Shown here piece after piece: positions 1,098 to 58,466 of a stretch of 64,000 nt of DNA. The notes beneath the pieces were generated by a model. That model saw only the letters and a list, made by a program, of their open reading frames with translations. It was not told the DNA's origin and made no database searches. The stretch covers positions 29,578,464-29,642,463 of the forward strand of contig NC_068985.1 of assembly GCF_001194135.2 (NCBI RefSeq). The letters run 5' to 3'. This stretch comes from Octopus bimaculoides. Lineage: Eukaryota. Position 1 is the stretch's first letter. Every line of letters begins with the position of its first letter. The translations under genes were made by a program, and so were the position numbers.

Positions 1098-2178
1098 AGA
1101 TGTACCCGGTGCAAGCTATGGACACATAAGAGGTGCAGCAACATCAAAGGCAGGTTAACTAGCAAGTTAGTTTTTGTTTGTGGCAGATGTTCAGGTGCAA
1201 TAAAGACTGCAAACAAACAGGAAACAACTTCTATCTCATTCCAGGGTGAAAAACTAGAGGTAGTCGATAGCTTCCGCTATCTGGGCAACCAAGTTAGAAG
1301 TGGGGGTGGGTGCGCTGAAAGTGTAGCTGCTAGAATAAGAATAGCCTGGGCAAAGTTTAGAGAGCTCTTACCCCTGCTGGCGACAAAGGGACTCTCACTC
1401 AGAGTAAAAGGCAGACTGTATGACGCATGCGTANNNNNNNNNNNNNNNNNNNNNNNNNNNNNNNNNNNNNNNNNNNNNNNNNNNNNNNNNNNNNNNNNNN
1501 NNNNNNNNNNNNNNNNNNNNNNNNNNNNNNNNNNNNNNNNNNNNNNNNNNNNNNNNNNNNNNNNNNNNNNNNNNNNNNNNNNNNNNNNNNNNNNNNNNNN
1601 NNNNNNNNNNNNNNNNNNNNNNNNNNNNNNNNNNNNNNNNNNNNNNNNNNNNNNNNNNNNNNNNNNNNNNNNNNNNNNNNNNNNNNNNNNNNNNNNNNNN
1701 NNNNNNNNNNNNNNNNNNNNNNNNNNNNNNNNNNNNNNNNNNNNNNNNNNNNNNNNNNNNNNNNNNNNNNNNNNNNNNNNNNNNNNNNNNNNNNNNNNNN
1801 NNNNNNNNNNNNNNNNNNNNNNNNNNNNNNNNNNNNNNNNNNNNNNNNNNNNNNNNNNNNNNNNNNNNNNNNNNNNNNNNNNNNNNNNNNNNNNNNNNNN
1901 NNNNNNNNNNNNNNNNNNNNNNNNNNNNNNNNNNNNNNNNNNNNNNNNNNNGCACATAAAAGACACCATTTCGAGCGTGGCCGTTTTCGTGCGGGTGACA
2001 CCTAAAAGCACCCACTACACTCTGAGTGGTTGGCGTTAGGAAGGGCATCCAGCTGTAGAAACTCTGCCAAATTAGACTGGAGCCTGGTGTTGCCATCCGG
2101 TTTCACCAGTCCTCAGTCAAATCGTCCAACCCATGCTAGCATGGAAAGCGGACGTTAAACGATGATGATGATGATGAT
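1098..2178 (+). mobile_element. 5'-truncated RTE-like LINE, 3' part (interrupted by N gap)
   Basis: ORF segment LEVVDSFRYLGNQV...RIRIAWAKFRELLPLL...KGRLYDACV is typical of the region downstream of the RT core in RTE-type LINEs. It includes a C-x2-C...H-x2-C...C-x2-C segment and ends in a (GAT)n tail. Confidence 0.8.
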
Positions 2179-3047: not shown

Positions 3048-3460
3048 NNNNNNNNNNNNNNNNNNNNNNNNNNNNNNNNNNNNNNNNNNNNNNNNNNNNN
3101 NNNNNNNNNNNNNNNNNNNNNNNNNNNNNNNNNNNNNNNNNNNNNNNGTTTAGAATAGTTGAAAATCAGTCTTTTTCAATCATTATAAGAATTTGGGCCA
3201 TCTTTAATAGATGAATTGTCGATAAAAACTTAATATTTTAGGTAGATAGTGAGGTTCACTACAAAGTTTGTAAAAATTTTTTAATGAATTGGGATTTGTT
3301 TTTTAATTGGAGAAAAAAACCCAAAACTCATGACAATTGTTAGTAACTTTCAAAGAAAACAGGAGATAATTTCAAGAAATTAGGATTAATTTCATAGAAA
3401 ATTCAATTTTTATTCCTTGGGGAAAATCTTTACTTTGAAGAGTAACTTTTATAGACTTAC

Positions 3461-23084: not shown

Positions 23085-23680
23085 CAAATATTCGGGTCGG
23101 TGGTATCGACTAAACACCTCCACTAAAAATTGCTGTGTAATGGTTCAAACCCTAACCGCCATATACTCGGTTAGGCAGTTTCATGTGACTGGTCTATAAA
23201 TCGACCGATTAGCGTGAAGCTGTGTCGTAATATGACTTCATGGATGTTCTAGAATCTACCCTCTTTTCACTCAATAGAAATCTTATAGTACCTAATTCAC
23301 TTGGCAGTCGACCTCCGGCTTTCGTACAGCTGGTTTTGGACTTTCGCGCAGACGGCTTCGGGTACTCTGAGAGATCGATTCTGAATCTGCACACAATGTC
23401 CCATAAATAGCTTCCTACGGATGCGGCACGGTTTTCTCAACTTTTGGTCTCAATTATATTATTAGCATCTTTGATTGTAAATAGCCAACACAAATATTTG
23501 GGTCGGTGGTATCGACTAAACACCTCCACTAAAAATTGCTGTGTAATGGTTCAAACCCTAACCGCCATATACTCGGTCAGGCAGTTTCACGTGACTGGTC
23601 TATAAATCGACCAATTAGCGTGAAGCTGTGTCGTAATATGACTTCATGGATGTTCTAGAATCTACCCTCTTTTCACTCAA
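23085..23680 (+). repeat. 190-bp direct repeats (23085-23274, 23491-23680), period 406 bp
   Basis: Near-identical caaatatt...cttttcactcaa blocks separated by 216 bp of unique sequence. Confidence 0.9.
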
Positions 23681-23708
23681 CAGGACCGCCACATTTAGTT
23701 GGCAAATA

Positions 23709-24553
23709 CAGGCATACCTCACCCTACATCGTTAATTGGTTCCAGGAGACACGACTTAAGTCGAAAAACGACTGAAGCCGAATCAACTTGTCTCTAGGCA
23801 GGGCTAGGCCGAATTTACTTGTCTCAAGGCTAAACCGATAATAACCATTCCCAGTTATGTACTTAATTTATGAATGCATTTTCAATAATACATAGTTAAC
23901 AAAAACCATGTGTGCTAAAATATTGTCCTTATCATGTACAATCGTTGATACAATTGTCCCACTCATCTCAAAAGATCGTGCAATTGCTACCGTTTTTTTC
24001 ACCCTTTTCATGGCGTTTTATCATAGCCAGTTTATGTTTCAGCATTATAGCATGATGCTTAGCACTTTCACTATGGATTTTCTTAGGAGCCATGGGGTAA
24101 AAAATAAAGTCACAAACGAATGAGAATGAGAAAGTAGCCGATAAACAGACGTAAACAAATCTGAATTCAAAACAATCGCTGGTATCACGAGTGACAACGA
24201 CGGCTAACGCTAGATGTTGGAACTAAAGTGCAATATGAACTCCGAAAGACAGATAAATAAGACAACACAGCTGATTTGATGATTTCGTTCACTAAGCTAC
24301 ATTAGTTTATGGTGTGCATCTTAACATTTACTATACGTATTTTAATATGATTTTATATGCTTTTATTCTTATTTATTTCACAGTAACATGATTTTATGTG
24401 CATTTAATGGTTTCCTAGTGATTTTACGATTCCAATATTTGTGGCGGACAGACGTAAAGTCGAATAAAATAATTTAACTTGATCTTTATTTTTCCATATA
24501 TTATTTTTGAAAACCGACGTATAATCGAAACGACTTAAGCCGAGGTATGCCTG
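23709..24553. mobile_element. Tigger/pogo-like non-autonomous DNA transposon
   Basis: TIRs CAGGCATACCTC...GAGGTATGCCTG with TA TSD; the pre-insertion target is preserved at 24883-24915. Confidence 0.9.
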
Positions 24554-24711
24554 TATATTTTACGATTCCGTATTGTCATTGTTTATCTCTCGCTCGGAGA
24601 TTTAATATAACTTATGTCTCTCTCTTTACGAGATCAGTAGCAGAGTGTCGCTAGAAAAAGGATATAGTATTTTGCGAGTGGAATGAGTTCTTCATCACTA
24701 GCCAGTGATTA

Positions 24712-24758
24712 ACACACACTGAAGACGGGTAACCACTCAGAAACCCGGGTCTATGTGT
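24712..24758 (+). ncRNA. Minimal type I hammerhead ribozyme motif
   Basis: Stem I acacaca/tatgtgt (6 of 7 paired); core CUGAAGA 24719-24725; stem II gggt-aacc-actc; GAAA 24740-24743; palindromic stem III ACCCGGGU; cleavage triplet GUC. Confidence 0.7.
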
Positions 24759-25444
24759 ATCATGTAAGTCTAGAGATGGGAACGATGACCTCCCTCACAA
24801 TCAGACACAGACAGTGTGTCGTTGGCTAGCTGGAGGAGATGTCTTTCTGGGACTAAAACAACAGTAACACCATCCTCTACAAGACCGCCACATTTAGTTG
24901 GCAAATATATTTTACATTATAAATAATTATAGCAAAAAGAAAAAAAAAAGAAATTAATGACTAATGTTATTTTGATTCATTTCGACACACAAGAGAAATA
25001 ACTATACACGTTTTAGTATTAATAGACCTCGTTAATAAAGCATAGACATCAATCAAACGCTATTCCATACTATTTACTGAAGTAGTAATGGGGTAATGAT
25101 TAAGTAGACGTTCAATAACATAAATGAGAAAGCATAAACAATTACCAGAAGAAATAACTCAGAGACGCCGTCCAAATGAAATGTAATAGGTAAGTGTCAA
25201 CATGTTTAAATACTAATGGACAACGATAGAATTATACTAAGCTGGTGTGTCGTTAAAAGTCAGGTTGTTCAGTCACTTGCTGGACAATAATAGTTCCGAG
25301 ATCCACTTCTTTATATAAATACAAGGAAATAATTATCTTATCAAAATAAATTCTGTTTGTTACAATTTGCAATAATTCAGTGAAAAGGAATATATTTTAC
25401 AAAAGAAAAACAAAAAATAAAAAGAAAGAAAAAAGAAAAAACAT

Positions 25445-26615: not shown

Positions 26616-27777
26616 AAACCTTGGTGGGCTCAATTACCTCGAGATTTTCTAAAAGTTGCTCTTTGTAAATGCAGTGTAAGCCAGTCTAGATACGTTTATA
26701 GCTCCAGGAATTCCAGAGTTTCAAACAAACTGCAAAGAATTTAATAAGAACAATCTACCTATCTGTCTATTTGGTTCTCTATTTGTATCTATCTATGTCT
26801 GTCTATTAGCTTGTCTGTTTATTTGATTGTCTCTGTCTGTGTATTTATCTATGTATAGACACACACGCATATGCACATGATAATCTAGACTAGAGTCGCA
26901 TTTTTAATACTGTGCATGCGCACACATGCTCATCCTTACTATTGTGTAACATTCTAAAGTCTAGCATTGTCATACATTGCAAGTGTGACTCCATTGTTCT
27001 ATTTCAATGACTGAACAATAAAATCTGTTTAGTTTTATTTGCAGATTGCAACGCACTCACATACACTGCCAAGATCAGTACCTGCTTTGTGGAATAAGCC
27101 TTCCTTCGTTGTAGCTCGCTTTCATTCCAGTTATCGTTCTCTCTTGTTTTGCTCAGCTTTTGAAATTTTGGAATAAAGTGGAAATTTTTGCATTTGGTAT
27201 ACTGATGTAATTGTTCACGCTGAATTAAATTTTGGGATCCTGTCGGTTTGGCTGCCAGTGTCAGTTCTGTTTGAACTGATTTCGGCGGAGACGGACTATA
27301 TGTAATCTGAACCTTTCTCCCCCTTATTTATTAATTTTTTTTTACGGAATCCCACATTTTAGGCTATGGAGATTCCGATTCTGAAAAAAAATTTATTTTG
27401 TTTTGTTTTCCCTGAATACATATAATAACATTTCGATAAAACTATAATATATATTTCGTTCCTGATACAAAGGGCCATTTTTGGTGTGGGTGAGATCAAA
27501 AAAGAGGCGATGCCCATAACCTCTGACATTGAGTTAGTGGGAGGAAAGTATCCTCAAACTAAAAACTGGCCTGAATGCTTCCAACACACATAATGAACTC
27601 CGTTAAAAATATTCCAGCTGGCAAGCGGTGGTGTTAAACCGGGTGGCAAGTTAAGTCTACCACCCAAAAACTCAAAACGCGAAAAGTCGGAACAAATACC
27701 GCAAGGCATCCGGTGCTATGTTCTTACAGTTCCGCTTTTGGATCGGTACTTATTTTGTCGATTCCGAAAAGATGAAA

Positions 27778-30700
27778 CTACTTCCAGCGCCATTCATTCC
27801 CCACCGCTACCCCCTCCCCCTCTGAATTCTAATTCTAAAGCTGACCCCAATAATACTGCCAGTTCATCTCCAAGCTGTGTTCTCTGCACCCGTACAAGTC
27901 ACTATTTGAAGACCATCAAATGCCACTTGTGTAGTCTAAGTTACCACAGGAGCTGTGTCGGCATTACTAAGGTTCAAGTCGGAAGTTTTTCTAAGTGGAC
28001 ATGCAACTGATGTCACTTCAGCTCTGACGTCCTTAGTAGGACAGAACCTTGCTCTGAATTCCAGATCCCTGTGTTTGTCCAAGCTAAGGCTTGTCAATCG
28101 GATCCCTAAGGGTGCTCGGACTTGTTTCGCCCTTGTTCTCTCAAAACTACTGAAGAACCTCTGCCTATCCAACAACACCTCGAATTGGCAGGAACTGTCT
28201 CTGTTCCCTTTGGTCTTCCTCCACGTGTCGAATGGGAATAGTAGATCCCTCACTTCTTCCCTGAAACAGCAGTTCGAGCTGTTTGAATCTACCCCAACCA
28301 CTATATCTCGGGTCGGTCGTCATCTCTACTCCGAACAACGGTCGACCACCTAACTTAAAGAATGCTGTTAATGCCAAATTCAGCGAATTTGACATTAAAG
28401 GAGCTGTTCGTCTTCTTTCGTTTCTGTCCTCTTTCGTCCCGTGTACCACAGACTCCCTCTACCAACTGAAGAAGAAACATCCTCCGGCCCCACCAGATGA
28501 TCACCTACACTGGTGCGACCCACCAAGTTTTCTACAACCCATCGTCACCCATGATAATGTCAGGAGAGTAATTGCATCTTTTCCAGCAGGTTCTGGCGCT
28601 GGGATCGATGGCTTACGACCTCAGAATCTCAAGGGCGGTATCTCCCTGTCAGCTAAGTGATGTTGAGCTCGAACTCTTGGAGAACCGAACACAGTTCATA
28701 AACTTGTTCTCGTCCGAGAGTATCGATGCCTACATTCATCTCCTGTTCTTTGAGGCCAGAGTATTTGGTCTCACCAAGCCCAACGATTACCTCCGCCCCA
28801 TAGCAGTTGGTTGTACTCTGCAATGGCTCACAGCAAAAGTGTGCCGGTCCTCAGTTTCTAACTGCCTGACCGAGGAATTTTGCCCTACTCAGCTAGGAGT
28901 GGATACTAAGCTAGGTTGTGAGGCTGCTGCTCATACCACCGGGACTTTCGCCAACTTGTCCTCTGAGTCCCCAAAGGTCATCCTCAAACTTGACATTAAG
29001 AATGCTTTTACCTCCATCAGTCGAGACTTCATCCTCCGCACAGTAAGGGAGAATTCCCCACCACTTTATCACTTTGCTTGGTAAGCCTATCACCTCCTTT
29101 GGTGACCACCTCGTTCTATCTGCCACTGGAGTCCAACAGGGTGATCCACTTAGTCCTGCCCAATTTGCATTGGGTATTGAGGATGTCACCAAGATGAGAG
29201 CCGTCCTAGAGTTAAATGTCTGGTACCTCGATGACACTTGTTTAGGAGGTCCTCCTGACATGGTCCTTGCAATTGCGAGGACGATGATCGAGGAATATGG
29301 TCGTAGAAGTCTTAGCGTTAACAGCTCCAAATACGAGCTCTGGCTCCTCAACCACTCAGTTTCGCATGAGCAGACTACTAAATTATTTGTTCACTCTCTC
29401 CCCTCTATCATGATTCCTCCTTCATCAGCGTGGTGTTCCCTTGGATCCCCAATTACTGACCTAGCTTTCGAGTCCATCTTTTGATCCAAAATGGCTAACC
29501 TCGAACAACTTGAAGTATACTTAGGAATTACTTGTCAATTCCTAAGCTATTGTGTTTTTTTTAGAGCTAGTCCCTTTTGTAGATTCCTGTCATTCCCCAA
29601 TACTTTGACGACCTAATTTTCAGGAAACTCGAATGCTTGGTCAATGTCAAACTCACCCCAGACTCCCGCGACCAAGCTCCTTTGCTCAAACGGTTTGGGG
29701 TCTAGGTCTGCGCAAGTGCTTGTAGTAACGCCTGCGCATGCGTAGTCTTACGCATGCGTAGAATTAAACAAGCAAGCGTTTCCCGCTCAATTCATTCTCT
29801 TTCTCGCTGGCCAGCGATTGAGCATGGACGTGTGTTTAAGCTGTCTCTACATCTTTCGGTCTTACGCTCGACAGCTAGTTATTCTCACCTCTAAAGATGT
29901 ATAACTAAAGATATGTATGTTTACCACCTAAATAAATGTTGTTTAAGTTGTTTAGTCTGGAGTTCAGCGTTCCGTGTATTCCTTTAATTTTATAGTAGAA
30001 AGTCAGGTATACAATCTAAAGATGTATAACCCACTTTCTACTAAATGCTCATCTTTATCCCTTCTCTGTTTTCTTTCCTCCGTCTACGTTTGCTCATCTT
30101 TGGTAGGCAACATCCTCTCCTCTCCAACATGGTCTTATTCCAACAGGGAGATGGATGAAGCTCTATGACAGTGGAGAGAGCTGCGTTTGTCAGTTCCGGT
30201 TACAGTGGAGGATAGATGGAAACAGAGAGTACCACTTTCAGCTCTCTCCTTGATCAATCTGATCAATTTTCAATGTGTCGCCTACTCTCAGCTAGTGCAA
30301 AATTGTCAGCGAACTGGATTGATGCCTTGCCTGTGGCCAACATTCGAGATCTACTCAGTCTAGATGAACTCCGCATTTTCCTCGCACTCAGAGTGGGAGC
30401 TAACGTCTGTAGGGTACTGAGATGCCGCTGTGGTAGGCCACAGTTCACAGTGTGTCTTGCGCCTAAATGCTGGTCGTTTCGCTTGTCACACCGAGCTAAA
30501 CTTAATCATTAAGCGGGCCCTGGCTGGAATTAATATCCCCTCTGTTCTGGAGCAGTCGGGGTTTTCCAGAAGTGATGAAAAAAGACCAGATGGTTTTTCC
30601 CTCTGCCCCGGGATTAGAGGTAGGTGCCTCATTTGGGACGCAACAGACTGCGACTCTTACTTTCTCACATATCCTGGATGCTGCAGTTAATGGGAGGGTC

Positions 30701-31002
30701 ACTGCTTTCGTAGCCGAACGGAAGAAAACCCTGAAGTATCGCGACCTGACAGTGAACTACCTCTTCCAACCTGTGACGTTTGAGATGCTCGGAGGAACTG
30801 GGCCACTAACCTCGAAGTTCTTGTCAACATTGGCAGCTCGCTTCACCGAGGTGTCACGTGATGCCAGTCAGAACGCTTGGCTTTCCCAACGCCCTAGCCT
30901 CGCCATCGCCCGTGGTCATGCTGCTAGCGTGCTGGCTTGCTTCAGTTTGTTCCGTTAAACTTTGCGGTATGCAACCAGTTGCTATGATAAAAAATTAAAA
31001 AA
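27778..31002 (+). mobile_element. Frameshifted CRE-clade non-LTR retrotransposon: PHD finger, RT, zinc knuckle and restriction-like endonuclease
   Basis: PHD CVLC...IKCHLC...YHRSC...WTC; RT motifs GIDGLRP, RPIAVG, LKLDIKNAF, GVQQGDPL, WYLDD; C-terminal CRCG, HTELN, KRPDG, LIWDAT; A-rich tail. Spread over several frames. Confidence 0.9.
29721..30044 (+). mobile_element. Solo LTR inserted in the CRE element
   Basis: Starts TGTAGTA and ends TACTA(C)A, contains AATAAA, 5-bp TSD gtgct/atgct. Absent from the paralogous copy at ~26405. Confidence 0.65.
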
Positions 31003-34000
31003 TTCCCCACAAATTGTTTCAATAGTTTTAACAGAAAGATTTGGAAGAATTAGATGAAAGTTCTCTGGTAATTTTCTTTCATGTAAATAAATGTTTGTTA
31101 ATTCAAAAATTTGCCAGCAAAATCTTATAAAATGACAATGTTCTAAAAGAAGTACATGTTTATGTTATACATGAAATTGAAACGTTAAGTTGAATTTGAA
31201 AAGGTGTATTTTTTATATATTCAGTTTAAACGATAACAGTTAAGATATAGGGTTAAATAAATTGTTTCAAACATCATTTTCGTGTAATTAACGACAAATG
31301 AATTCCTACATGTGACTCGGTGCCTGGAATCGAACTCGGAATTAGTAGCCCGCGCTCTTAACCACTACGCCATATGGCCGTGGGCGTATGGCGTAGTGGT
31401 TTTAGAAGAGGGCTTTTACAACGTTCTCTCCAAGTGTTTTCTGCTAAAATCTATGCAAACAATACAATTCAGTTACGTCCCTTGGCATAATTAAAACCAG
31501 TGTTTTGAGTTCTTCTTCCTACATGGGTGCAGCCTTGTGCAAATGTTAGAAATGATTTTCTGATCATTTCTTTATGATCTCATTCGACATATATATACTA
31601 CTCTGTTGTCTATAATAATTACCGAATCGGTTAATCTAACGGTAAGCACGGATCTTTGTCTGTATTATTGTATTTTATTTTAAAATCGGATCGAATGCAC
31701 TTAACCATTTAAATTTTATCTCCTAAAATATTTTACCTATGCACTAAATTGATTGCTTCACAAGCGCAAAGTTTACAGATTTACCTCTGAAAAGCGAAAT
31801 GAGAGAGAATGATAACGTTTAATTGCTCGTCTTTATCTCTTCCTTGTTTTCTTTCCTCCATCTACGCTTGTTCCCCTTCGGTAAGCAAAAGGCTTAGCGA
31901 TATTTCATCTGTCTTTACGATCTGAGTTCAAATTCCGCCGAGGTCGACTTTGCCCTTCATCCTTTTGGAGTCGGTAAATTAAGTACCAGTAGGTCTGGCC
32001 CCCTCCCACAAAATTTCGGGCCTTGTGCTTAGAGTAGAAAAGAATATATTCTTGTTACAAGGTTTGCATCGGAAATTTTTATTTAAATATGAGCCTCTAA
32101 TACGATTTTCGAGCAGGGTAGTTTTTCTATAATTAAAAGAGAGAGACATTGGGTTATATACTTTGGAAGATAAGATGAGTGTGGATGGAACGGCATAAGT
32201 ATTCCCTATTAGGCTGATCAACAACAATTAAGTACTATATTGAAACAAGGGTACTAGTGTTGCTCAGTGGTATCGATCGAACCTGGAATAGGATAGTTAA
32301 GAAACAAACTTCTTTGTCAACTGTTTAAAAAACTTTTTTTAATTTTATTTATTTATTTATTTATTTTTAATCATGTGAATAGTTGAATAGCAAACACAAC
32401 GTGACAATTAAGAAAAGAGCTTTTATGCCGTCGCACGATCTATTAGAAATAGCAGGTAGATCTCTCAAATCACAGTCCTTGATGCACCAAGTTTAGATAA
32501 AAGACTAGATTGCCATCAGCTGTAAGGCAGTAATAGCTGCATCCGTTATCTGTCAGTACTTTTTAGAAAAGTTCATATTTATATGCTCTGTAAAAATACT
32601 CGGTAAGTCGTATAACTCTGATCTATGATCGAAGACAATCTTCCTGTTTTCATTCAGACTTAGTGCATCAAGAACTGTGGTTTGAGAGAGATTTGGCTGA
32701 CCAGAAGAGAAGGGCGCGCAGGCAGGGGACGATTGGGCCTTTTCGATCGGGGTAGCTGAGAGCGCTGGACGTGTGAGCGCTTCGACACGGTGAGGGACAG
32801 CAACTGCTATTTTTAGCGTTCGGGTCGGGTCACGTGGAAGGGTACGTTACCACCGGAGAGGTCTGCGTCGACGAAGAGATGGTAGGTGTCTTATTTCTAG
32901 CCTCCCGCATACACCACATCTATTATGATTATATTCGAATTTAATATGAAAAAAAATTGGTTATTGCCATACATCATAAAATGAAAATTGAAATATCGAT
33001 AAAAATGTGTGATGTGTCTCTTAATGTACGTGTGAACGCCCACCATTTTTTTTTCTTTTCTTTTTGTCCTTTTTCGTCTTAAATTCCGATATAATCGTAA
33101 TCTACATTATCTGAAAGTTATTTGTAGAACGTTTCATTTAAAAATACCCTATTTTCTGAAAGTTATGAGGAAACAAAACTGACTTTTGTGAATTTTCAGA
33201 AACTCCCCTTCCCACCATCAGCTGGTGGTGGAGGTGTTGGGAAGGTGGGTTGTAGGTGAGGTTTGACAGAGGAGAGACTGTGTGTTTGAGGGAGTTCATG
33301 GCAATAGAGGACCTGCTTGTATATGTGGATAGCCACACTTTTACTTACCTTGACATGACCTTTCATTTGACTGCTATGTCTTGCAGTTCAAGTGATCCTG
33401 CAAAGACCCCATCATAGGCTCAAGTTTAGGTCTGTCATGAGCCTACAAGCTTTTTACATCAGAGCTTATCTTGGTTTCTAGGGCTTATGGGCAACTCAAG
33501 AAGTCCCCCATGAACATGATGTCAGTCCATCACAGTTGCTGGTACTAATTTTCAGCTGAAAGGAGTGAAACAGTGTAAAATGAAGTGTTTTGTTCAAGAA
33601 CACCAGCCAGTCTTGAAATTGAAACCACAACCATATAATCATGAATTCAACACCCCAACTAAGACCACATAGCTTCATATTGGCTTATCTTATTTGAATT
33701 AATATTGATGTATTTATTCTCACAAGTTGCAGAAAGATAATTATAAATAATAATCTACTGTTGAAAAGTCAACATTAATTCAATGGCAAGTGTTAGTTCA
33801 GTACATAAGGGAGAAAACTCCAAAAATATTTCAATCGGATTAGCTCTCTTCAGCAAAGAATGAACTCTGCCATACTTACCAAAGTAATGATGAAAAAAAC
33901 ACTTAGTGAAGAAGGGTAAATTCTTGCCTGAAACATTTATCCCTTTGACACTCTTGAATCAGTCTTTTAATAAATGTGTGTTGTTCCTTTTTGAATTTAT

Positions 34001-34027
34001 TCTTCTGTTTGTTTTGAAGAACCAAAT

Positions 34028-36519
34028 ATGACTGAGAGTGAAAAGAAAGCTACCTCTGATGCAGAATTTAATGTAAATGATTACTGGATCAATCGGTGGA
34101 ACACTGGAAAAATCCGTTTCCACAGGGAGGAAATGCACATGTAAGTTACTCAATTATCTTTTAACTAATTAACTTAATCAAGCACCACATCTGACTCAAG
34201 TTGTAACTGTCTAGTTTTGCCATGGTTGTGTTGCCATACTATTTATTTAGTTATTTTCATATGCCATGGAAACTGAAATAAACTTTGACCTAATGAGCCT
34301 TTAAACTTATTACAGACCTAAAGTCAGTCCCACTAGACCCAAGATATGATCCCAGGGGCTGTTTTTTTATTGTTTAAGAGCTACATTGCACAGGTGATCT
34401 ACCCTTTATAAGATAGTGTTATTTGAGGGAAGCTTATCTGCTACTTCTAACACATAGGTGACTGCCTAGAGGCTCCCTTACATGTCTTGAATTGATAAGG
34501 ATGCTGGGTGACCAGCTGAGGGATGACTATTTCCTGTCACATCACTGATATTGCATCATACCTATAGTCAACTTCTTTGTTACCATATTTCTGTTAAAAT
34601 ACACAGTTTTTATTTTAATTAATTCTGAAAATAATGAAGAATTTAATAATAAAATAACTTTGCAGTAATTAAAATGATGTTTGAAACATAAATCAACATG
34701 AAATTTTAAAAGAAACTTTTTATTTAGATCATTTTACCCTTTAGCGTTCAGATTATTCTGTCAGACGGAGTGGTTGGCATTTAGGAAGGGTATCCAGCTG
34801 TAGAAACCATGCTAAATCAGATTGGAACCTGGTGCAGCTTTCCAGTTTAGCAGTTTCAACCAAGCCATCTAACCCATGCTAGCATGGAAAGCATATGCCC
34901 TTCATCACCTTAAGCCTTACTTGTTTCCCTGAGTTAAGGATTTATCTTTTATTTCCTCTTGCATCTTCAGCAGTATGAAGCTGGGAGATGTTAACAAGCA
35001 TCACATTTTCTCACCTCAATACTTTTCATGCAAAGCATCGATACAGGCATACAATCTGAAGCCTCTATTCATGCACATTTGTATGCTTGCACATGTACAC
35101 ACACGCATACTGCTACATTTGTAGTGCTGCAGAGATCCACAAAACCCCAGGCTGGATACCATTGAAGGGTTTAGCTGTTATTACCAGGGGTTTGTGTGAT
35201 CTCAGAAAGGCTCCCTATCTTGTTCTTGGTTTCTAATTCTGCCAGGATTTCTTTGCTACTTGTTCCTACATTACCGACAAAACAAGTACCAGTAACATAT
35301 TGAGGTTCAATCTCTTGATTACACTTTTCCCTTTAAATAACTGGCATGGTACTCTGTCGAAAAAAAATTATTGTTGTTTTTATTGAATATTATTGAAATA
35401 ATTTTTTTTTTTTTGCTGTTCTTTTCCTTTGTCTTTAAGATCACTTGAAAAACATTTGGACAAATTTATTGATGGAAGAAATGGAATAAAAATTTTCTTT
35501 CCCCTCTGTGGGAAATGTGTAGATATGAAAGGGTAAGTATTGTCTTTGAATAACAGTGACTCAGTAACATGATCTTGAATCCTCATCCTGTAATAAATAC
35601 TGTTTCCAATCCTTTTCTCAACCTTACATCCTTCTGGAACTCCTTCCCTACTCTTGTTTTTCCCTCACCCACTAAATTTATGAGGATCCAACAGAACATT
35701 ATCTCAAGTCATGTGTGTGTGCGTGCGTAAATATAGGCAGATGTTAAACGATGATGACAATGATGATGATGCATATATATATATAGGTGTAGTTTGTTTA
35801 TTTTTCAGATTAGCAGATAAAGGGCATAATGTTGTTGGAGTTGACATTGCAGAACAAGCTTTCCAGGAATTCTTTACAGACCAGAATTTGGAATATACTG
35901 TTGAAGAATTAAAGGACAACACAGGAAAACTCTTTACAGTAAATATTCACTTTTACAGTAGAAGCTTTTATAAAAAGTTGAAATAATGGTGCAGGTGTAG
36001 CTGTGTGGTATAAAATTTGCTTTCCAACCACACAGTTTGAAGTTCAGTCCCAGAGTGTGGCACTGTAGCCTCATCTATATCTCCAGGTTGACCAAAGCCT
36101 TGTGAGTGGATTGGATTTAGTTGACAAAAACTGAAAGAAAAATCCTGTCATAGATTTATATATCATCATTAAACATCCATTGTTCACACTGCCATGGGTT
36201 AGACATCAGCATCGTTTAACGTCCGCTTTCCATGCTAGCATGGGTTGGACAATTTGACTGAGGACTGGTGAATCGGATGGCTGCACCAAGCTCCAATCTG
36301 ATCTGGCAGAGTTTCTACAGCTGGATGCCCTTCCTAACGCCAACCACTCCGAGAGTGTAGTGGGTGCTTTTACATGCCACCAGCATGAGGACCAGTCACA
36401 CGGTACTGGCAACGGCTACGCTCAAAATGGGGTTTTTTACATGCCACCTGCACAGGAGCCAGTCCAGTGCCACTGGCAAACGACCTCGCTTGAATGATTT
36501 TCTAATGTGCCAAGTGCCA

Positions 36520-36564
<45 letters not shown>

Positions 36565-39500
36565 CATACATACATACACACATACTTATGTAACCACATG
36601 TGTGCTATTGGTGATTGTTTTCCTTTGTCTTCCTCTTCTCTTGGACTTTCCTCTGTCTCCTGTTTTTGAAGAAGAGCTTTGCTCGAAACATAAAACACCC
36701 TTTTTTTTCCTTCTCCGAGCGTCTTATTAATAAGTTGTATGTACCACGTCCTCGTGTTGTTATTTTTTTTTTTGTCCTTTTTATTCAGCAGCAGTAGTGT
36801 ATTGATGGTACAGTGGGTAGTTGCATTGACATTCTATTTGAAATATAATTTTGTGAGTTCATTCTGACCTTAAGTGCATTTACACATACATGATGCTTAG
36901 TTGTTTTGCATTTAAACCGGTCAGATCTGGCTGAAATATTCTATGTGTTTTATGTTCAGACTGGTCAGATCCAGCCTCTATCACCTTCCCTACAATGTCA
37001 TTCTAAAAAGAAACAATCACAGCACTGGAATCTCGAAGCTATGAGACAATGCATGAGTAATACAGAATGATGAGAATAAAATAAGCAATCATATTTGACA
37101 GAGTGATCTGAATACTAATGAGTTAATAATAAATGGCAACTTAAGAACTGAAATTATAATATTATAGTAAAGAAATCCAGAAAAATTAAGTTAGCTGTTC
37201 AAAAATTGTTTCAATAAGTATTTCATTTGAATTTTATCTTTCATCTAGAGCAAAGATGGGAAAATCAAACTATATTGCATGGATATTTTTAAATTTTCAA
37301 AGTAAGTATTGCATTTTTTAAAACTCTACTAAATTTTCAATATTTGAACATGGACATAGAGGAATGACTGAGTAGCTAGCTTTGCAACCACATGGTTCCA
37401 GGTTCAGTCCCTCAGTGTGCACCTTGGGCAAGTGTCTCCTACTATAGCCTGGAGCTTAAAAAAAGCCAGTTGTGTGTGTTTGTGTCTCCCTGACCTGACA
37501 TCATGTTGTAGTTGTACATGAGTGTCACTGTCAAAAAGACTATGTAATTCATTTCTAATATTAAGTGGAAATATATCTGGATATCAGCCTACTTGCTTAG
37601 CCAATGGTGTGGCATCATTTGAAAGCTAAAATGATGAGGAGCACATTGTAACCAGTGATGTATATTACATGGTCACATGATGTCTGGATATGGGGAAATA
37701 TTAACTTGTTTGGAAACAGATGAGAGTTGGCAACAGGAAGGGCAGTATTGGTGGTGATGTAGTAGTGGCTGTGGTAGTTGTTTCTCATGTCCAAGAATTT
37801 CAATTTCCTCCTGTTGTAGAAAAAAATCTTCAGGGAGAAATGCCAATGGTGTTGATTTGGGACAGATGCGAGAAAGGAATTGCTCTAAATTGATAAACTG
37901 AATAAAAGTGCTTTGTAGCATTTATTCCATGCCAGCTACATATCTTTATTCTATATCAGCTACATGTATTAATTAGCCATTTGATAATTAGAGATCCTCA
38001 TTTGCATCATCATCATCATTCAGCTTCTATTTTTNNNNNNNNNNNNNNNNNNNNNNNNNNNNNNNNNNNNNNNNNNNNNNNNNNNNNNNNNNNNNNNNNN
38101 NNNNNNNNNNNNNNNNNNNNNNNNNNNNNNNNNNNNNNNNNNNNNNNNNNNNNNNNNNNNNNNNNNNNNNNNNNNNNNNNNNNNNNNNNNNNNNNNNNNN
38201 NNNNNNNNNNNNNNNNNNNNNNNNNNNNNNNNNNNNNNNNNNNNNNNNNNNNNGGTGGTGGTTGACAAGGAACTGCAGATGGAATCCTTTTTCAGACAAA
38301 AGCTACTTCAGTCCTCACTGCCCCATTCATGTGATGTGTACAGGAAGTAGCTCCTAGTTTCTGCATGGGGCAAAGCATCTCTGACATTTATTTCACTTGC
38401 AGTAATTCCTTCCAGGCCTTCCTTTAACTGAACTAAAATAAAGGAAGTAAAAATAGGTTATTTCTTTTCTTCCAGAATATAATTAGAAGTGCTTTACATT
38501 TCAACCAATTGTAATAAATCTTGCTATTAATTTTTCTTCTTTTTCTTTTCTGCCAAATCACAGGGATTTTGAAGGACAGTTTAATGCTATTTGGGATCGA
38601 GGAGCTTTTGCTGCTATCATCCCCAAAACCAGAGAAAGGTTGGTAATAATTGCTTAATGACAATAACATAATTACATAGTCATAATGATATAATATATAA
38701 AAATAAATGCACCCTTTTAAAGCCTAGCCAGGCTCATGGTCCGGGTTTCAATGGCGTATGTGTTCCCCAACTGGACGGGACGCCAGTCCATCGCAGCGTT
38801 ACTCATTTTTGCCAGCTGAGTGGAGTGGAGCAACGTGAAATGAAGTGTTTTGCTCAAGAACACAACGCGTCGCCCGGTCCAGGAATTGAAACCACAATCT
38901 TACGATCATGATGCTGACACCCTAACCACTAAGCCATGCGTCTCCACGATATAATATGTTAGTTGCATAATATTACTAATGATAGTAAAATATACTAATT
39001 AATTGTAAGAAAACCAGAGCACTAATTACATCAACCCCAGTGTTTCACTGGTACTTAATTTATCAACCCCAAAAGTAGGTAATGCAAAGTTGGCCATGGT
39101 AGAATTTGAACTCAGAATGTAAGGATGGATGAAATGTTGGTGAGCATTTCGCCGGGCATGCTAATGATTCTGTTAACTCGCTACCTTAATAATAATAATA
39201 ATAATAGTAATAATAATATTAATAATAATAATAATAATGGTGATGATAATAATAATAATAATATTTTGTCTTCGTATAAAAGATGGGCTACAGCAAATAT
39301 TCTGGGCTTCATATATTTTACCCCAGTCTCACTATGATGGCATGCACTGCTCTCACTCAATAATAATTATAATAAATGCCCTGATGCAATACCAGGCATT
39401 GGCTCTCATGGCTTCTGATCTTAACTGATTGTACATTGTTTTGTCTTGGTATAAAAGATGGGCTACAGCAAATATTCTGCTCAATACCACAGATTTGCTT

Positions 39501-42500
39501 GTCAGTTGCTTGATCTTAACCAGTTGAGCATGTCCTTTAATGGATGATGTTATGTGCATCTCTGATCACGAGCAGAAGTAGTGGGGGAGCATCATAGCCA
39601 TGTGTTGAGAGGAACTCTTTGGGGTTTGAATAATTCACCACTAGAAACATGGGTGTTTTGTGCCAAAATTTGATTCCAATATTAGAAGTATTTAAAAAAT
39701 GCAATTGAATTAATTTTTTTTGTTTATTTTCTTTTATTTAAAAATATAATTGTTGCTGTTGTTGTTGTTGCATTTAGGTATGCCCAGGTGATAAAAGGGT
39801 TACTTTCCCCTGACTGTCACTATATGATTGCCACAATGCAGTATGACCTTTCCTTATTTCCAGGTAAATCAAGAATGGTAGAGCAAGATACACTATAACC
39901 ACTTGAATATATGGAGAGATTTTCCTTTCTTTGAAAATCATCCCTCACAAGAATATGAACCACTTATATTGAAGTTCATATAAATTTCTAAGTAAACATG
40001 AAACACTTTCCAAAAAGACTTAAAAATAAGGACCTTTCATTTTTGAGGGACACTGTAAAAGAAAGAAAATCCATTTTATATTTGAGTATATTTATATAGT
40101 GTTTACTTGCCTTCTTTTTACAGTTATTTGTATTTCTTAATTACTTTTTTATTAGTTTTAGTCTTGAACATTTCACATCAGCATTGATATATTAGATAGA
40201 ACCTGGAATCTAAAGAAGTTGGTGGTCTCCATTGACAAACGTTATTTCATAAAAGTTCATGGACAAAAAGTATATCAAATTACAATGAGTTGATTTACTA
40301 TGAGGAGTGAAAAACCCAATGTTTCAGACAGTTGCCCTTCTTTGAGGATACAGAATAGAGAGGCTGATAGCACAGTGTCAGAAAAATAAATGGAAAAGAA
40401 GGGACAGAGCAGTGTAGGGTGTTTGTATGGTGGGAGGAGAGGAAAAGGACAGTGTGAGTATTATGGAAATAGAGTAATGTGTGAAGAAGTAAAATGAGGG
40501 TGAGGAGCAGTGAAAAGTATTAGCAAGAGCCAGGTCAGTTGAAATGGAAGGGAAGTGGTGAGAGATGATTACGTATGGACTGTAGAAAAAGGGACACATT
40601 AGAGAATGAAATAAATACACACAACGTTGGATTTGGAGAAGAAATAGTGTGAGGGAAGTAGGTGGGGAGCTTTAATGGAATGGTTAAAATTGTTTGAAAG
40701 AAAATTGGCAAAGACTGAGAAAGATTTCATGCATTGGTCTATGATTAGAGATAGGAAGATGGAGGAGAAATGAGTTGAAATAATGGAAATATAAGAGTGA
40801 ACAATGTGTCCTAAGTGAAAGAAATGATAAGTAGAAGCATGGTATGTATAGTATATACGCACAGTCAATATGTGCAGTGAATGTGCAAAATATACACTGC
40901 AGTTAAAAGCGGAACAGTATGCTTAAATACATGGACCAATGAGGGAGGTTTTATGTGGTCATTTAATCTGCTAGAAATAGCAACCAAATCCACCTCAAAT
41001 CATACCCCATTATCATTATCACTATTGGACTTGCTTTTTCCATGCTTGCATGGGTGGGATGAGACATTTTCCTGGTGTCAGCTCTTATTTCCAAGTAAGG
41101 AATTTATTCTATGTCTTCACACATTGAATCACCAAGTCGCTTGACTTTGTTTAATGTAGTATATAAGCAATGTTACCATTACCCTAATGGTATCAATATG
41201 AAGATATGCAGAGCACCTCCCCCCCCCCACATACACACAAACACACTTATGACAAAATGGTTAAAAAGTGAAATAGGATAGACAAAGACTGCATAGAAGG
41301 GTTTCAATATTAGATGGATTGTATCCATGATGCAAAAGCAGCGATGGTGTTGGAGGTGGTGGTGGGTGACTTGCTTCTGTATAATTTCTATTTACCAAAT
41401 TTCACTTGAAAAGCATTGGTAAATGTGAGACTATGATTGTAGACACTTCCTCAAGATGTCACACTTCCTAAATAGCAAAACTACGGCAGTAAAGTACCCT
41501 GCAAGAGCTGCATGTATGCCACACAGAGTGTGTTCAGTATTACATACGTCGGCAACCAGAGGAAAATTTCCTCTTCATCTACTCCTCATGAGACTAGAGC
41601 TGAACAACCAGGGCTTAAATCTCTTCACAGCTAAGCAGACGTAGACTCCTTTTCCTTTGACTCCTTTGCTGGTTTCTGTCATTGGACTGCAACTGTTTTG
41701 GGGCACCATCTTGAAGGATTTAGCAAATGAAATTGACCCAGTAATTATTTTTCAGTTTAGTGTATTTAGTGTACCATTCTCTTGCTGAACTGCTAAGTTA
41801 CAGAGACATGAACAAGCCAACAGCAATTGTCGAACAGAGAGACTCAAATACACACCACACAACCTATGCAAGCATGGAAAATGGNNNNNNNNNNNNNNNN
41901 NNNNNNNNNNNNNNNNNNNNNNNNNNNNNNNNNNNNNNNNNNNNNNNNNNNNNNNNNNNNNNNNNNNNNNNNNNNNNNNNNNNNNNNNNNNNNNNNNNNN
42001 NNNNNNNNNNNNNNNNNNNNNNNNNNNNNNNNNNNNNNNNNNNNNNNNNNNNNNNNNNNNNNNNNNNNNNNNNNNNNNNNNNNNNNNNNNNNNNNNNNNN
42101 NNNNNNNNNNNNNNNNNNNNNNNNNNNNNNNNNNNNNNNNNNNNNNNNNNNNNNNNNNNNNNNNNNNNNNNNNNNNNNNNNNNNNNNNNNNNNNNNNNNN
42201 NNNNNNNNNNNNNNNNNNNNNNNNNNNNNNNNNNNNNNNNNNNNNNNNNNNNNNNNNNNNNNNNNNNNNNNNNNNNNNNNNNNNNNNNNNNNNNNNNNNN
42301 NNNNNNNNNNNNNNNNNNNNNNNNNNNNNNNNNNNNNNNNNNNNNNNNNNNNNNNNNNNNNNNNNNNNNNNNNNNNNNNNNNNNNNNNNNNNNNCTTTTG
42401 TTAGGCATGCCATTCAGAAAGTCCCGTGGGTCACAGTTCGCCCACAACTGAACTATACCAATACAATAATCATTTTCACAAAGTTTTTACTAAATTTCCT

Positions 42501-43107
42501 GCTCAGATTCAAGTCAGAGTACATTTTACTCTATTATCATTATTCTGTCTTCTCTGATTTTTACTAAACACTCTCTCTAAGGTCATCAGGATAATCAACT
42601 ATTTAGTTTTGAATATCTAAATACTTTAATAGTGTTCGCATTAAAGCTAAGCAAGGAACATTCTAGAATTTGATTGTAATGGTTATTAACCCAACAAATA
42701 ATTAAAAAAAAAACAATTTCCATATTGTTCCTCATTGGACCAACTAATGTGTCAGGATGGTGTGATTTTGAACTTTTAAGTTGTAGGTGAACTATGCAAT
42801 ATTCTTAATTATCAACAAGTATTATGCAGCAAGTACAATTGTACAGCTATTTTGAATAGCCAAAATTACTTCATCAAACTACAACATTATGTATTTCAAA
42901 ACTTTGTTTCACTTTGAAATGCTTTACCAAGCAAGTACAATGTATCAGCTGTCATATATTAATTATTATGTACTTGATATATATTTCTATTTGAAAGGTG
43001 ATATATGCAGTGTTGAAGAAATTGATGAAAATGACTACGGTCCACAGTTCAAAGGAAGGGGATTGGATGTGATTTTTGAACTGATCTACTTTTTGAAAAT
43101 TAAATGA
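34028..43107 (+). CDS. TPMT: Thiopurine S-methyltransferase-like gene, copy B (7 coding exons visible; exon 7 expected in gap 41885-42394)
   Basis: GT-AG exons 34028-34140, 35440-35532, 35809-35938, 37249-37301, 38564-38638, 39778-39863 and last exon 42998-43107 ([10 protein letters not shown]...[15 protein letters not shown]). Phases are compatible; no stops or frameshifts seen. Confidence 0.95.
38697..38947 (-). mobile_element. Full-length tRNA-derived SINE, copy-B-specific
   Basis: Head gtggagacgcatggcttagtggttagggtg..., 10-bp TSD gatataatat (38687-38696 and 38948-38957); empty site in copy A at ~7462. Confidence 0.85.
40310..40800 (-). mobile_element. Decayed Penelope-like element with degenerate hammerhead at its 3' end
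   Basis: Mirror of 4800-5232. On the minus strand it ends cctcaaagaagggcaactgtctgaaacattg, a mutated CTGAAGA...GAAAC motif. Confidence 0.5.
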
Positions 43108-44739: not shown

Positions 44740-46731
44740 ACTCCTACACACACATTAGGCAGCCTTTCTATCTTCTTTTCTCATTTGGTAAGGGGACTTT
44801 TAACTCTTGCAAGCTACAAGACAATCTTGCTAATGCTGCTGGTGTTGAACAGGCACCCAGTACACTCTGTAAAATAGATGATACTAGAAAGGTATCCAGC
44901 CATAGAAACCATACCAAAACTGAGGTACTGGAAGAAAATGTGGTCCTCTGGTCCATTCAATCATATCTAACCAATTCCAGTATAAAAAGTAAATGTTAAA
45001 ATTAAGGGGACAGTGTTGATAGCAGTGATAACAACAATTATGACAACATGAAATTTTTTCTTTATTTAAAAGTATGAATAACACTTAAAAACCATATATT
45101 TTCTAATTGCCTCTTAATCATAATACTGCGAAATAGTACTAATGTACAAAATATGCAGAATGAATTGCAATTATATGATCTATTTTTTTAATCCTAATTT
45201 TGTATAAATAAAGGAAAAACAAAATGTTTAAATAAAAAGAAAAACTTTACATAATTCAAGAATTGTATACAAATAAATCATTTAAAATTATTTATTCTTG
45301 TGTTTTGGTGACTTTATTTTCACTATGAGGACAAGAGACAAGAGGTTGCTGCTGTCATTAATCAATGTTCTGTGTCTCTGATTAGTACTGTAGTGGCAGC
45401 ACTGTGTAACTGACTGATGTTTGGTTATTCTACATATAACTGTAACTAAACTGCAAATGACTGAAACAAGTAAAAGTGTATATATATATATATATATATG
45501 GTGCCGTGCAAAAGTACCAGTGCTAGTACCAGATAAAAAGCACCCGGTGCACCTGTAAAGTGGTTGGCATTAGGAAGAGAATTAGCTATAGAAACCATAC
45601 TAGAACAGACAATGAAGCCTGGTGCAGCCCCAGGCATTACCAGATCCTTTCAAACTGTCCAACTTATGCCAGCATCTTTCTCTTTCCATCTAACAAATCC
45701 ACTTGGTCAGCCCAAGGCTAAAGAAATGTTAAGTCTGGCCTCCTTGGTGGAGAGGACTGACTTGCAAGAGTCCTGTCTTAGTGCCACATAAAAAGTACTT
45801 GTGGTGCTATGTAATAGTGCCTGTGCGGTATCATGTAAAAGCATGCATGCAGTAACATGTAAATGCACTTGTGCAGTGCCACATAAAAGCACCTACGTTG
45901 TACCATGTAAAGGTGCCTGTGCAGTACCATATAAAAGCATCCAACATCCAACAAGTTGTTGGTGTTAGGAAGGGCATCCAGCTGCAGAAACCATGACAAA
46001 TCAACTGGACCCTAGTGCAGCACTCTGGTTTACCAGCTCTGGTAAACTGCCCAACCCATACTAGCATGGACAATGGATGATAATGTTAATGTCTTCAAGG
46101 TCATCAGATTCAGAGGCCCTATACAGGCAAGAATATTGTCCTTTCCCCTAGAAGCATCATCATATTTACATCAACTTTCATGCTTACATGGGTAAGAGAG
46201 AATTTGTTGAGGCAGCTTTTCCAAAGACCAAATGCCCTCCCTGTTGTCAACCTTTTCTTATTTCCAAGCATGGCTGGACATGTTTTCATGGAAGACTAGA
46301 AATGAACAAAATCTGGATCTTATCGGTTTGGCTGCCAGCATTTCAATAATTAAAGTTTACCCAAAATTTTAAAATTTGGCACAATAATACACTTGCTCAA
46401 ACTGAATTACTGGAGTTATTTAATTTTTTCCAGAAAAATGCTTTTAAAAAGTTATAGAGGTTTAAAGTTTGATCATTTTCACCCAGTCAAGAAACAGGAT
46501 TTGGAAGCTGTCATTTTGTGCGTGGACATCCTGAGAATAGCACGTGTTGTCAATATTGCTAAACAATACGTGTTATGTCTCCGGTAATTTTCTTTCGTGT
46601 AAATAAATGTTTATGTTAATTCAAAAGATTTATCCAAAAAAAACCTTATTTAGCAGTTATTTTTAGCACCTCAATGCTCAATGACAAAAAGAAGCGAGTA
46701 AACAAACATTTAAGCATTCAATATACGGCGG

Positions 46732-56642: not shown

Positions 56643-57170
56643 AAGAATTGTTAGCATATCAGACAAAATGCAAAATGCATTTTTTCTGGCTCATAACATT
56701 CTGACTTGGAATTCTGCAGAAGTCAACTTTGCCTTTCATCCTTTCGAGGTCAAGAAATCAAAGTACCTTTCAAGTATAAGGTATCAATGTAATTCACTTA
56801 CTTCTTCCTTAAAACTGCTGGCTTTGTAACAAAATTTGAGATCATCATCATCATCATCATCACCACCACCACCACCATCATCATCATCATCGTCATCATT
56901 AAGGCAGTGAGCTGACAGAAAATTTAGATGTCTGCTAATTACCTTGGTTTCTAATTACAATATTGATGATGATGATGATGACGACGATGATGATGATGAT
57001 GCCAATGTTGACAAATTTTATTCATTACCTCCTTATGTTTTCTTTTATTTATTTCAGATTATTAAAACAAAAGTGTTGTGCACTTGAAGAAAAAAGATTC
57101 TGTAACAGATTTTTCTGTACATTACCTACCTTCCCCTGCCCTTCAGAAAATTTTAATCCAAAATAGCATT

Positions 57171-58466
57171 ATGGATTCAGTCAGTCAAAATATTGCTGAT
57201 TCCTCACTAAGACCAAAGGATTTCAGCAGAAGCTTTAACCAAGATATGATCACTAGTCAGAACAGAAATGATCCTTGCAAATTCTATGGTATATCATATA
57301 CTGAAACTGCTTGTGCTGTGTCTGCATATATTCCACCAGCATCACATCCTTTGATACCCTCACAGTCATTGGATAATAATGGAAGTTTAATGATATCAGT
57401 TACTTCACAGTCAGTACATACTGGAGTGCTGCCTGCATTACCAGATGCACCCTTACAACCTTCATCTAATTCAAAGACAATAAATTCTAAAAAATTAGAT
57501 CAGCCCAGGCCATACAACTGCCATTTTTGTTCAAAGAAATTTTCACAGTCAGGTCACTTAACAAAACATCTCCGAGTTCATACTGGTGAGAAACCTTATG
57601 AGTGCACTTTCTGCAAAAAGCGGTTTTCTCAGTCAAATAATCTTACTGCACATATGCGTACACATACTGCTGAGAAACCTTATGAATGCCCTTGTTGTGG
57701 ACTTGCCTTTTCTCGATCTGACAACCTTGCAACCCATGTCAGGACACATACTGGTGAAAAATGTTTCCCTTGTACGATGTGTCCTAAATCTTTTTCTCAC
57801 TCTGGTAACCTCACCGAACACATCAAAACACACACAGGAGAAAAACCATTTGAATGTGAATACTGCAACAAGAAATTTTCACAGTCAGGCCATCTTACCA
57901 AACACCTCAGGATTCACAAGGGAGAAAAACCCTATATATGTAACTTCTGCTCAAAAGCATTTTCCCAGTCAAATAACCTAACTGTACACTTGAGAATCCA
58001 TACTGCAGAACGACCATTTTTATGCAACTTTTGTTCAAGTACATTCCCTCGTTCTGACTCTTTAAAGAGACATTTACGTGTGCATTCTGGAGAACGTATT
58101 TATGAATGTAATCATTGTGAGAAAACATTCTCTCATGCAGGGAATTTGAGTGAACACTTGAAGACACACACAGGTGAAAAGCCTTATGCATGTACACTTT
58201 GTGAAAAGAAATTTGTGCAGTCAGGACACTTAACAAAACATCTAAGAACACACACGGGAGAAAAACCATTTTCATGTTCAGTTTGTAAGAAATCTTTTAT
58301 ACAATCAGGACACCTGTCAAAACACATGAAAATTCATCAAAAAGACAGTTTATATCTTGGTACATGTAGTAAGGATTCAAGTTCCACAGATCCCCCAGAA
58401 GCTCTAACAAAGCCTCCAACGTCAGAGAGTGTGTGTGCAGAAACACAGCCCACAATATCGTTATAA
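57171..58466 (+). CDS. C2H2 zinc-finger protein, 431 aa, 10 tandem fingers, single coding exon
   Basis: Acceptor tttcag at 57058, in-frame stop at 57063, first ATG at 57171. Ten C-x2-C-x12-H-x3-H fingers with TGEKP-type linkers; TAA ends at 58466. Confidence 0.93.
   Translation: MDSVSQNIADSSLRPKDFSRSFNQDMITSQNRNDPCKFYGISYTETACAVSAYIPPASHPLIPSQSLDNNGSLMISVTSQSVHTGVLPALPDAPLQPSSNSKTINSKKLDQPRPYNCHFCSKKFSQSGHLTKHLRVHTGEKPYECTFCKKRFSQSNNLTAHMRTHTAEKPYECPCCGLAFSRSDNLATHVRTHTGEKCFPCTMCPKSFSHSGNLTEHIKTHTGEKPFECEYCNKKFSQSGHLTKHLRIHKGEKPYICNFCSKAFSQSNNLTVHLRIHTAERPFLCNFCSSTFPRSDSLKRHLRVHSGERIYECNHCEKTFSHAGNLSEHLKTHTGEKPYACTLCEKKFVQSGHLTKHLRTHTGEKPFSCSVCKKSFIQSGHLSKHMKIHQKDSLYLGTCSKDSSSTDPPEALTKPPTSESVCAETQPTISL

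Follow-up and report, generated by a model that had tools for sequence, protein, structure and literature searches.

Do the amino acid differences between two neighbouring methyltransferase genes of an octopus reflect a change in substrate preference, or do they record the history of the DNA in which the genes lie? This question is raised by a 64-kb stretch of Octopus bimaculoides chromosome CM046605.1 (~29.58-29.64 Mb), the whole of which is called the window below. It contains two genes resembling that of thiopurine S-methyltransferase (TPMT), copies A and B, arranged head to head. A first-pass annotation of the sequence had found the changes between A and B clustered in segments of the S-adenosylmethionine (SAM)/acceptor pocket and had suggested that the two enzymes diverged in substrate specificity, with B further from the consensus. 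Our analysis favours another explanation. Mosaic gene conversion among functional TPMT paralogues is the best reading of the A/B pattern, and we would give it about an even chance of being correct. According to this reading, at least three TPMT copies, belonging to a family common to O. sinensis and O. vulgaris, would evolve in concert via repeated gene conversion. The uneven differences between A and B would then be mainly tracts that were imported, or retained, from a different paralogue, and the clearest patches of this kind would be a 54-nucleotide (nt) tract in exon 1, a K69G dinucleotide shared with a third copy (copy C), and the codons of an Ala-Ala-Ile-Ile (AAII) motif shared with the O. 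sinensis paralogue O3.

Differences between copies A and B

The comparison of A and B covers exons 1-6, which account for 550 nt of ~705 coding nt. Over this length the two copies differ at 25 nucleotides in 24 codons, 19 of the differences being nonsynonymous and 6 synonymous by the Nei-Gojobori method, and the result is 18 residue changes. Our recount is identical to that of the first-pass annotation. The distribution described there was also recovered: seven changes lie in residues 15-30, three in the exon 5 motif (L145F, V146A and S149I) and four in exon 6 (R169H, S173A, A174T and P179L); CGKS becomes CGKC through S64C; and the one difference in exon 3 is synonymous. L57F, K69G and M125I had not been listed. 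The ratio of nonsynonymous to synonymous rates (dN/dS, or omega) between A and B is 0.75 by Nei-Gojobori and 0.68 by one-ratio maximum likelihood. Substitution divergence between the arms of the duplication that carry the genes is 4.5% in exons (25/550) and 4.8% in non-coding DNA (388/8125).

With O. sinensis as the outgroup to polarise the changes, 14 of the residue changes are derived in B and 4 in A. Non-coding changes number 100 on the A side and 92 on the B side (4463 sites), versus 6 and 17 in coding sequence (Fisher p=0.026). Copy A acquired 4 nonsynonymous changes where the intron rate predicts 9.9 (p=0.03); therefore, A is clearly under purifying selection. Copy B acquired 14-15 replacements where 9.1 are expected, with P=0.046-0.13 according to the method of counting events. 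With the exon 1 tract left out, its nonsynonymous changes number 8, versus 8.2 expected. B takes replacements at about the neutral rate. In a three-taxon codon model, omega was 0.48 on the A branch, 1.00 on the B branch and 0.58 on the branch to the outgroup. The first-pass annotation had proposed branch-site tests with mollusc orthologues. Likelihood-ratio tests of the three-taxon model gave no support for an omega above 1 on the B branch (p=0.42 against one ratio and p about 1.0, from three taxa and with no power).

The claim that the changes are clustered in a non-random fashion holds for the seven changes in residues 15-30 (scan permutation p=0.01). It does not hold for the exon 5 and exon 6 groupings, which are not significant (p=0.16-0.30). 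In nucleotides, the N-terminal cluster is a tract of 54 nt with 9 substitutions, 7 nonsynonymous and 2 synonymous, all of which are derived in B (scan p=0.0008). The intron rate predicts 1.1 substitutions for a tract of this length (Poisson P=3e-6). A and B are identical over the 120 nt upstream of the tract, and intron 1 downstream of it is at background divergence. The synonymous changes in the tract are raised ~9-fold (2 in 10.8 sites versus 0.22 expected, P=0.02), and the local omega is ~0.8. Selection on residues leaves the synonymous rate unraised, whereas a different ancestry raises it, so the substitution pattern points to a patch with a different history rather than to residue-level selection. 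The exon 1 tract may have arrived by conversion.

Concerted evolution of the octopus paralogues

The TPMT cluster of O. sinensis consists of three paralogues, O1 on the minus strand followed by O2 and O3 on the plus strand, with O1 and O2 head to head. O. vulgaris has the same three paralogue types. The paralogues of these two species (XP_029637164, XP_029637123, XP_029637125, which is O3, and CAI9722665) resemble the O. bimaculoides genes in their eight exons, their 234-amino-acid (aa) product and their head-to-head first pair. They differ in being without N15, V16, D18, G27, K28, R30, F145 and L179 of B. In addition to A and B, O. bimaculoides has copy C, a partial TPMT gene (XP_014777183) on the same chromosome at a distance of 10 Mb. 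Exons 2-5 of copy C are visible, and exons 1 and 6-8 are in gaps. Its motif is DRAALVAIS, and it has G69 in common with B and S64 in common with A. Copy C may correspond to O3, in which case it has either moved or been misplaced during scaffolding. The first-pass picture contained neither copy C nor concerted evolution, nor the one C-terminal exon that is hidden by a gap in each of A and B.

Matches of the flanks show that A corresponds by position to O1 and B to O2, and the head-to-head layout is common to both species. Within species, the non-coding distances are 4.2% for A-B, 2.9% for O1-O2, 2.9% for O1-O3 and 4.5% for O2-O3 (3232 sites). Between species, all pairs are 6.8-7.5% apart regardless of position, the positional pairs A-O1 and B-O2 being at 7.0% and 6.8%. 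The copies thus group by species and not by position, which indicates concerted evolution.

Individual stretches of the genes carry other affinities. In intron 4, 13 consecutive informative sites link B to C and are surrounded by sites that link A to B (permutation p<5e-6). Coding sites are also in conflict: 229, 249, 460 and 461 join A with B, 205 and 206 join B with C, 191 joins A with C, and 437 and 446 join B with O3. The K69G dinucleotide of B is common to copy C. In the exon 5 motif, the Ala146 (GCT) and Ile149 (ATC) codons of B are the codons of O3, which reads DRGALAAII where B reads DRGAFAAII. The third copy of O. vulgaris has the same residues as B at 146 and 149, and within the motif Phe145 is specific to B. 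Judged from these codons, A146 and I149 are old paralogue-type states and not new in B. The O. sinensis copy with AAII is the third, tandem gene of its cluster, whereas B occupies the position of the second.

Gene conversion homogenises inverted and tandem paralogues such as palindrome arms and duplicated globin or opsin genes. The octopus genes resemble concerted paralogues in general in three respects: the copies of one species are more similar to each other than to their positional orthologues, ancestry shifts in blocks, and short divergent patches lie inside otherwise homogenised arms. They differ in that A and B are homogenised incompletely, with 4-5% divergence remaining, and in that the exon 1 patch lacks a donor among the sequences searched.

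Several observations weigh against conversion as the source of the pattern. The synonymous excess in the exon 1 tract comes from two sites only. Neither the window nor the O. sinensis loci yielded a donor of the tract. A search at the copy C locus also gave none, but exon 1 of C is unassembled there. The residues NVND...NTGKIR are carried by no other Octopus sequence in the searched protein collections, and only one of the seven tract residues (N25) occurs in another Octopus paralogue, from O. vulgaris. A burst of selected substitutions may instead have produced the tract. The AAII type is found in one paralogue of three Octopus species despite homogenised flanks, and its persistence could reflect selection that maintains a functional difference. 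Finally, each copy has one exon hidden in an assembly gap, exon 7 in B and exon 8 in A.

Fold and cofactor site

The Pfam TPMT family (PF05724) is recognised in A with 175.9 bits (198 aa) and in B with 156.3 bits, the cut-off being 26. When the comparison is limited to a common length of 183 aa, the scores are 161.4 for A and 155.8 for B, and three complete O. sinensis genes score 146.6-156.5. The best match to a TPMT in the PDB has E=7e-55. An AlphaFold2 model of B, built from the 194-aa public gene model, has a predicted local distance difference test score (pLDDT) of 82.8 and a predicted template modelling (TM) score (pTM) of 0.81. Its best PDB matches are 2GB4 (mouse), 2BZG and 3BGD, with TM scores of 0.78-0.82 (0.82 for 2GB4) and E values of ~1e-19 to 1e-18. 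Compared with mammalian TPMT (human 2BZG and 2H11; mouse 2GB4, 3BGD and 3BGI), the octopus proteins belong to the same Pfam family, have 42-46% identity and share the class I SAM-methyltransferase fold. The gene is present in one functional copy in mammals and as at least three clustered paralogues in Octopus.

The residues of human TPMT that contact S-adenosylhomocysteine (SAH) are 26, 29, 33, 40, 69, 70, 90, 91, 133-135, 152 and 153 (PMC9640560). In our alignment, the octopus equivalents are 17, 20, 24, 31, 60, 61, 81, 82, 123-125, 142 and 143. A and B are identical at 12 of these 13 positions. The sole difference is at 125, the equivalent of human I135, where A has M and B has I, as does the human protein. 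W20, W24, F31, L60, C61, I82, R142 and G143 equal the human residues, so the equivalents of human W29, W33, F40, L69, C70, I91, R152 and G153 are conserved in Octopus. R152 of human TPMT is required for S- and Se-methylation (PMC10844679), and R142, its equivalent, is kept in both A and B. Mapping the A/B changes against the human contacts by alignment gave a divided result on their location in SAM/acceptor-pocket segments. The changes do sit in segments that bear SAH-contact residues, and they flank the published contacts. The contacts themselves are spared except for M125I. In the model of B, residues 16-25 form a helix and residues 26-37 a loop; any argument from the helical face of residues 27 and 28 is an inference.

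R226 of human TPMT binds substrate (PMC13089183). The equivalent site lies in exon 8 and varies among the cephalopod TPMTs; in this the octopus proteins differ from the mammalian enzyme. O1 has R here, O2 has W, O3 has K and B has Q; exon 8 of A is unassembled. The last exon that we assign to B has 81% identity to the last exon of O. sinensis O2 (X4), and 83% over an alignment of 36 aa. At every visible exon of A and B the splice sites are canonical AG/GT, and the visible reading frames contain no stop codons or frameshifts. A and B look like working SAM-dependent methyltransferases because of their cofactor contacts, the catalytic Arg, the intact visible frames and changes that are far milder than random ones. 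Both genes are presumably complete and expressed.

Selection and decay as alternatives

The alternative closest to the original proposal is adaptive divergence, in which positive selection reshaped the N-terminal lid of B by W20, W24 and F31, together with the strand after R142-G143, and altered the acceptor preference. Such selection would account for the ~14-15 replacements that B took where the constrained rate of A predicts ~4. The changes of B are benign and not random, which relaxed constraint alone fails to explain. The one significant cluster lies in the helix and loop that carry SAH-contact residues (PMC9640560). The retention of AAII in one paralogue of three Octopus species, and the different residues at the R226-equivalent site of the paralogues (R, W, K and Q; PMC13089183), also fit selection on function. 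However, omega on the B branch is 1.00 and no test places it above 1, and the excess of nonsynonymous changes over the intron rate is marginal. In the exon 1 tract, synonymous sites are equally raised. R142 and all but one of the cofactor contacts are the same in both copies, neither the exon 5 nor the exon 6 grouping reaches significance, and G27, K28, I125 and T174 of B are common states in the TPMT family. We therefore regard adaptive divergence as unlikely. For the suggestion that substrate specificity has diverged, the significant N-terminal cluster stands in its favour; the lack of an omega above 1, the synonymous excess in the tract and the old states at A146 and I149 tell against it. 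A difference in substrate preference between A and B is possible but unproven.

A further alternative is that B is redundant, evolves under relaxed constraint and is heading to a pseudogene, and that its differences from A are neutral drift. An omega of ~1 is consistent with this, as are a coding divergence of B that matches the intron rate and an NCBI gene model of B that is shortened to 194 aa. No full-length or transcript-derived B-type protein was found in the searched collections. Against this, the replacements in B do far less damage than random ones would. On an independent profile made from 16 non-Octopus TPMTs, the inferred ancestor of A and B reaches 262.9 bits, compared with 261.2 for A and 258.9 for B. 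With 14 random replacements the score falls to 237.6±6.7 bits, and none of 2000 simulations reaches the score of B. The 14 changes of B lose 4 bits versus ~25 for random ones, and this simulation rules out free decay. The exon 1 changes of B taken alone add 2.0 bits, whereas seven random changes in codons 15-30 give 252.0±4.9 (0/2000). The view of B as the more divergent copy is thus borne out by the number of derived residues, but its N-terminal changes bring it closer to the TPMT profile. With conservation judged from the outgroups only, the changes of B showed no significant tendency to spare conserved positions or to favour variable ones (hypergeometric p=0.26; entropy p=0.22). Decay is also at odds with the uninterrupted frame, the canonical visible splice sites and an exon 8 that is intact and in the right phase. 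In addition, the complete O. sinensis genes span a range of Pfam scores that includes that of B, the model of B shows a confident TPMT fold, and an assembly gap accounts for the shortened gene model. Taken together, we judge decay of B improbable.

Assembly gaps and gene models

The window has 16 runs of N, and contig breaks lie at the edges of the duplication. A and B would be an assembly artefact if two haplotypes, or one collapsed repeat, had been wrongly placed as an inverted pair. This is very improbable and was rejected: the copies differ by 4-5% in substitutions and by many indels across >8 kb, their flanks differ, and the chromosome assembly of O. sinensis, which has no gaps, shows a head-to-head pair between homologous flanks as well.

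Three gaps touch the genes (Table 1). The first lies inside intron 4 of B. On either side of it, the sequence runs collinear with copy A and also with the O. sinensis locus; that locus has no gaps, and its equivalent interval is 312 nt long (L004 14884-15195) and free of exons. The phase of exons 4 and 5 is identical across all copies. Since this gap is intronic and the orthologous interval is exon-free, the A/B count is unaffected. The second gap lies at the expected site of the 45-nt exon 7 of B. The end of the B arm aligns to position 3739 of A, and exon 7 of A lies 233 nt beyond. The sequence of B restarts at 42395, where it aligns to intron 7 of O. sinensis. The third gap, of unknown size, lies at the expected site of exon 8 of A. 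On its two sides, A 4069-3148 aligns to L006 29805-30726 of the O. sinensis O1 locus and A 3023-2699 to L006 35391-35712. The 4.7 kb absent here includes the equivalent of O1 exon 8 (L006 31416-31523). After the gap, the sequence of A matches DNA 3.9 kb past the last exon of its positional orthologue in O. sinensis. A search for exon 8 of A, both in the window and in the 10 kb downstream of the gene, gave nothing.

The public gene models are affected accordingly. The NCBI model of B (XP_014778197, 194 aa) runs on into intron 6, and it is cut to this length most likely because of the gap at exon 7. That of A (XP_014778196, 227 aa) runs on into intron 7. An older 239-aa model of B terminates in spurious exons, for which the gaps also account. 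The shortened models of A and B are most likely artefacts of the assembly gaps.

Layout of the locus and neighbouring features

A and B lie in the two arms of an inverted segmental duplication, which are separated by a spacer of ~8 kb. Part of the spacer matches, in inverted orientation, intergenic DNA between O2 and O3 of O. sinensis (L005 45843-47055), and this inverted match indicates that the cluster was rearranged between O. bimaculoides and O. sinensis. An open reading frame (ORF) fragment from the spacer has a weak reverse-transcriptase match (RVT_1, 26 bits, under the cut-off) and is probably a retroelement remnant. Intron 6 is short in O. sinensis O2 (~0.7 kb; L005 39377-40084) and 2-4 kb long in A, B, O1 and O3; the difference is therefore a deletion in O2. 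A dispersed repeat of ~130-290 bp, whose copies are 73-91% identical and occur in both orientations, is present in the introns and flanks of A and B. It looks like a short interspersed element (SINE). Elsewhere in the window, one ORF has a weak match to a PHD-finger, and an uninterrupted ORF of 462 aa codes for a C2H2 zinc-finger protein with multiple fingers (nine Pfam repeats, zf-C2H2 and zf-H2C2_2, at E=2e-73). An ARAGORN scan found no tRNA in the window.

Table 1. Features of the TPMT locus of O. bimaculoides. Positions are those of the window, except for copy C.
Feature	Position	Strand	Remark
TPMT copy A, exons 1-7	13830-13718, 11958-11866, 10886-10757, 10331-10279, 7597-7523, 5796-5711, 3505-3461	-	
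TPMT copy B, exons 1-6	34028-34140, 35440-35532, 35809-35938, 37249-37301, 38564-38638, 39778-39863	+	
TPMT copy B, exon 8	42998-43107	+	AG acceptor in right phase, TGA stop; 36 aa
TPMT copy C	CM046605.1 39,827,756-39,850,630		Third TPMT, partial
A arm of inverted duplication	19208-3739	-	Partner of B arm
B arm of inverted duplication	27392-41884	+	Partner of A arm; 86-98% identity per block
Exon 1 high-divergence tract	34063-34116	+	
Intron 4 exchange tract	37484-37609	+	
B codons 145-149 (F-A-A-I-I)	38607-38620	+	
Gap in intron 4 of B	38035-38253		733 nt past exon 4 donor, 310 nt ahead of exon 5 acceptor
Gap at exon 7 of B	41885-42394		510 N
Gap at exon 8 of A	3048-3147		100 N
Spacer segment matching O2-O3 DNA	23676-24879		
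Spacer ORF fragment	28572-29081	+	
ORF, PHD-finger match	1071-1433		
ORF, C2H2 zinc-finger protein	57078-58466	+	
Dispersed repeat	36204-36496, 13012-13302, 1987-2170, 346-612, 45954-46083, 34768-34892		And other copies

Implications

It is conceivable, though doubtful, that octopuses keep a specialised, neofunctionalised type of TPMT acting as a small-molecule S/Se-methyltransferase, and that selection shields the AAII motif behind the catalytic Arg-Gly, the non-Arg residue at the R226 site and, in O. bimaculoides, a rebuilt N-terminal lid from the conversion that evens out the remainder of the gene. If this is true, the patches that resist conversion would reveal residues that determine the specificity of TPMT, an enzyme whose physiological substrates (selenium, tellurium, reactive sulfur species and drugs) are still under study. 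The patches would also show an expansion of detoxification genes in cephalopods. The locus also gives a caution: a dN/dS near 1 with clustered changes in young paralogues can come from mosaic gene conversion. A and B themselves join the TPMT family as unexceptional new members, whose concerted evolution follows an instructive pattern.

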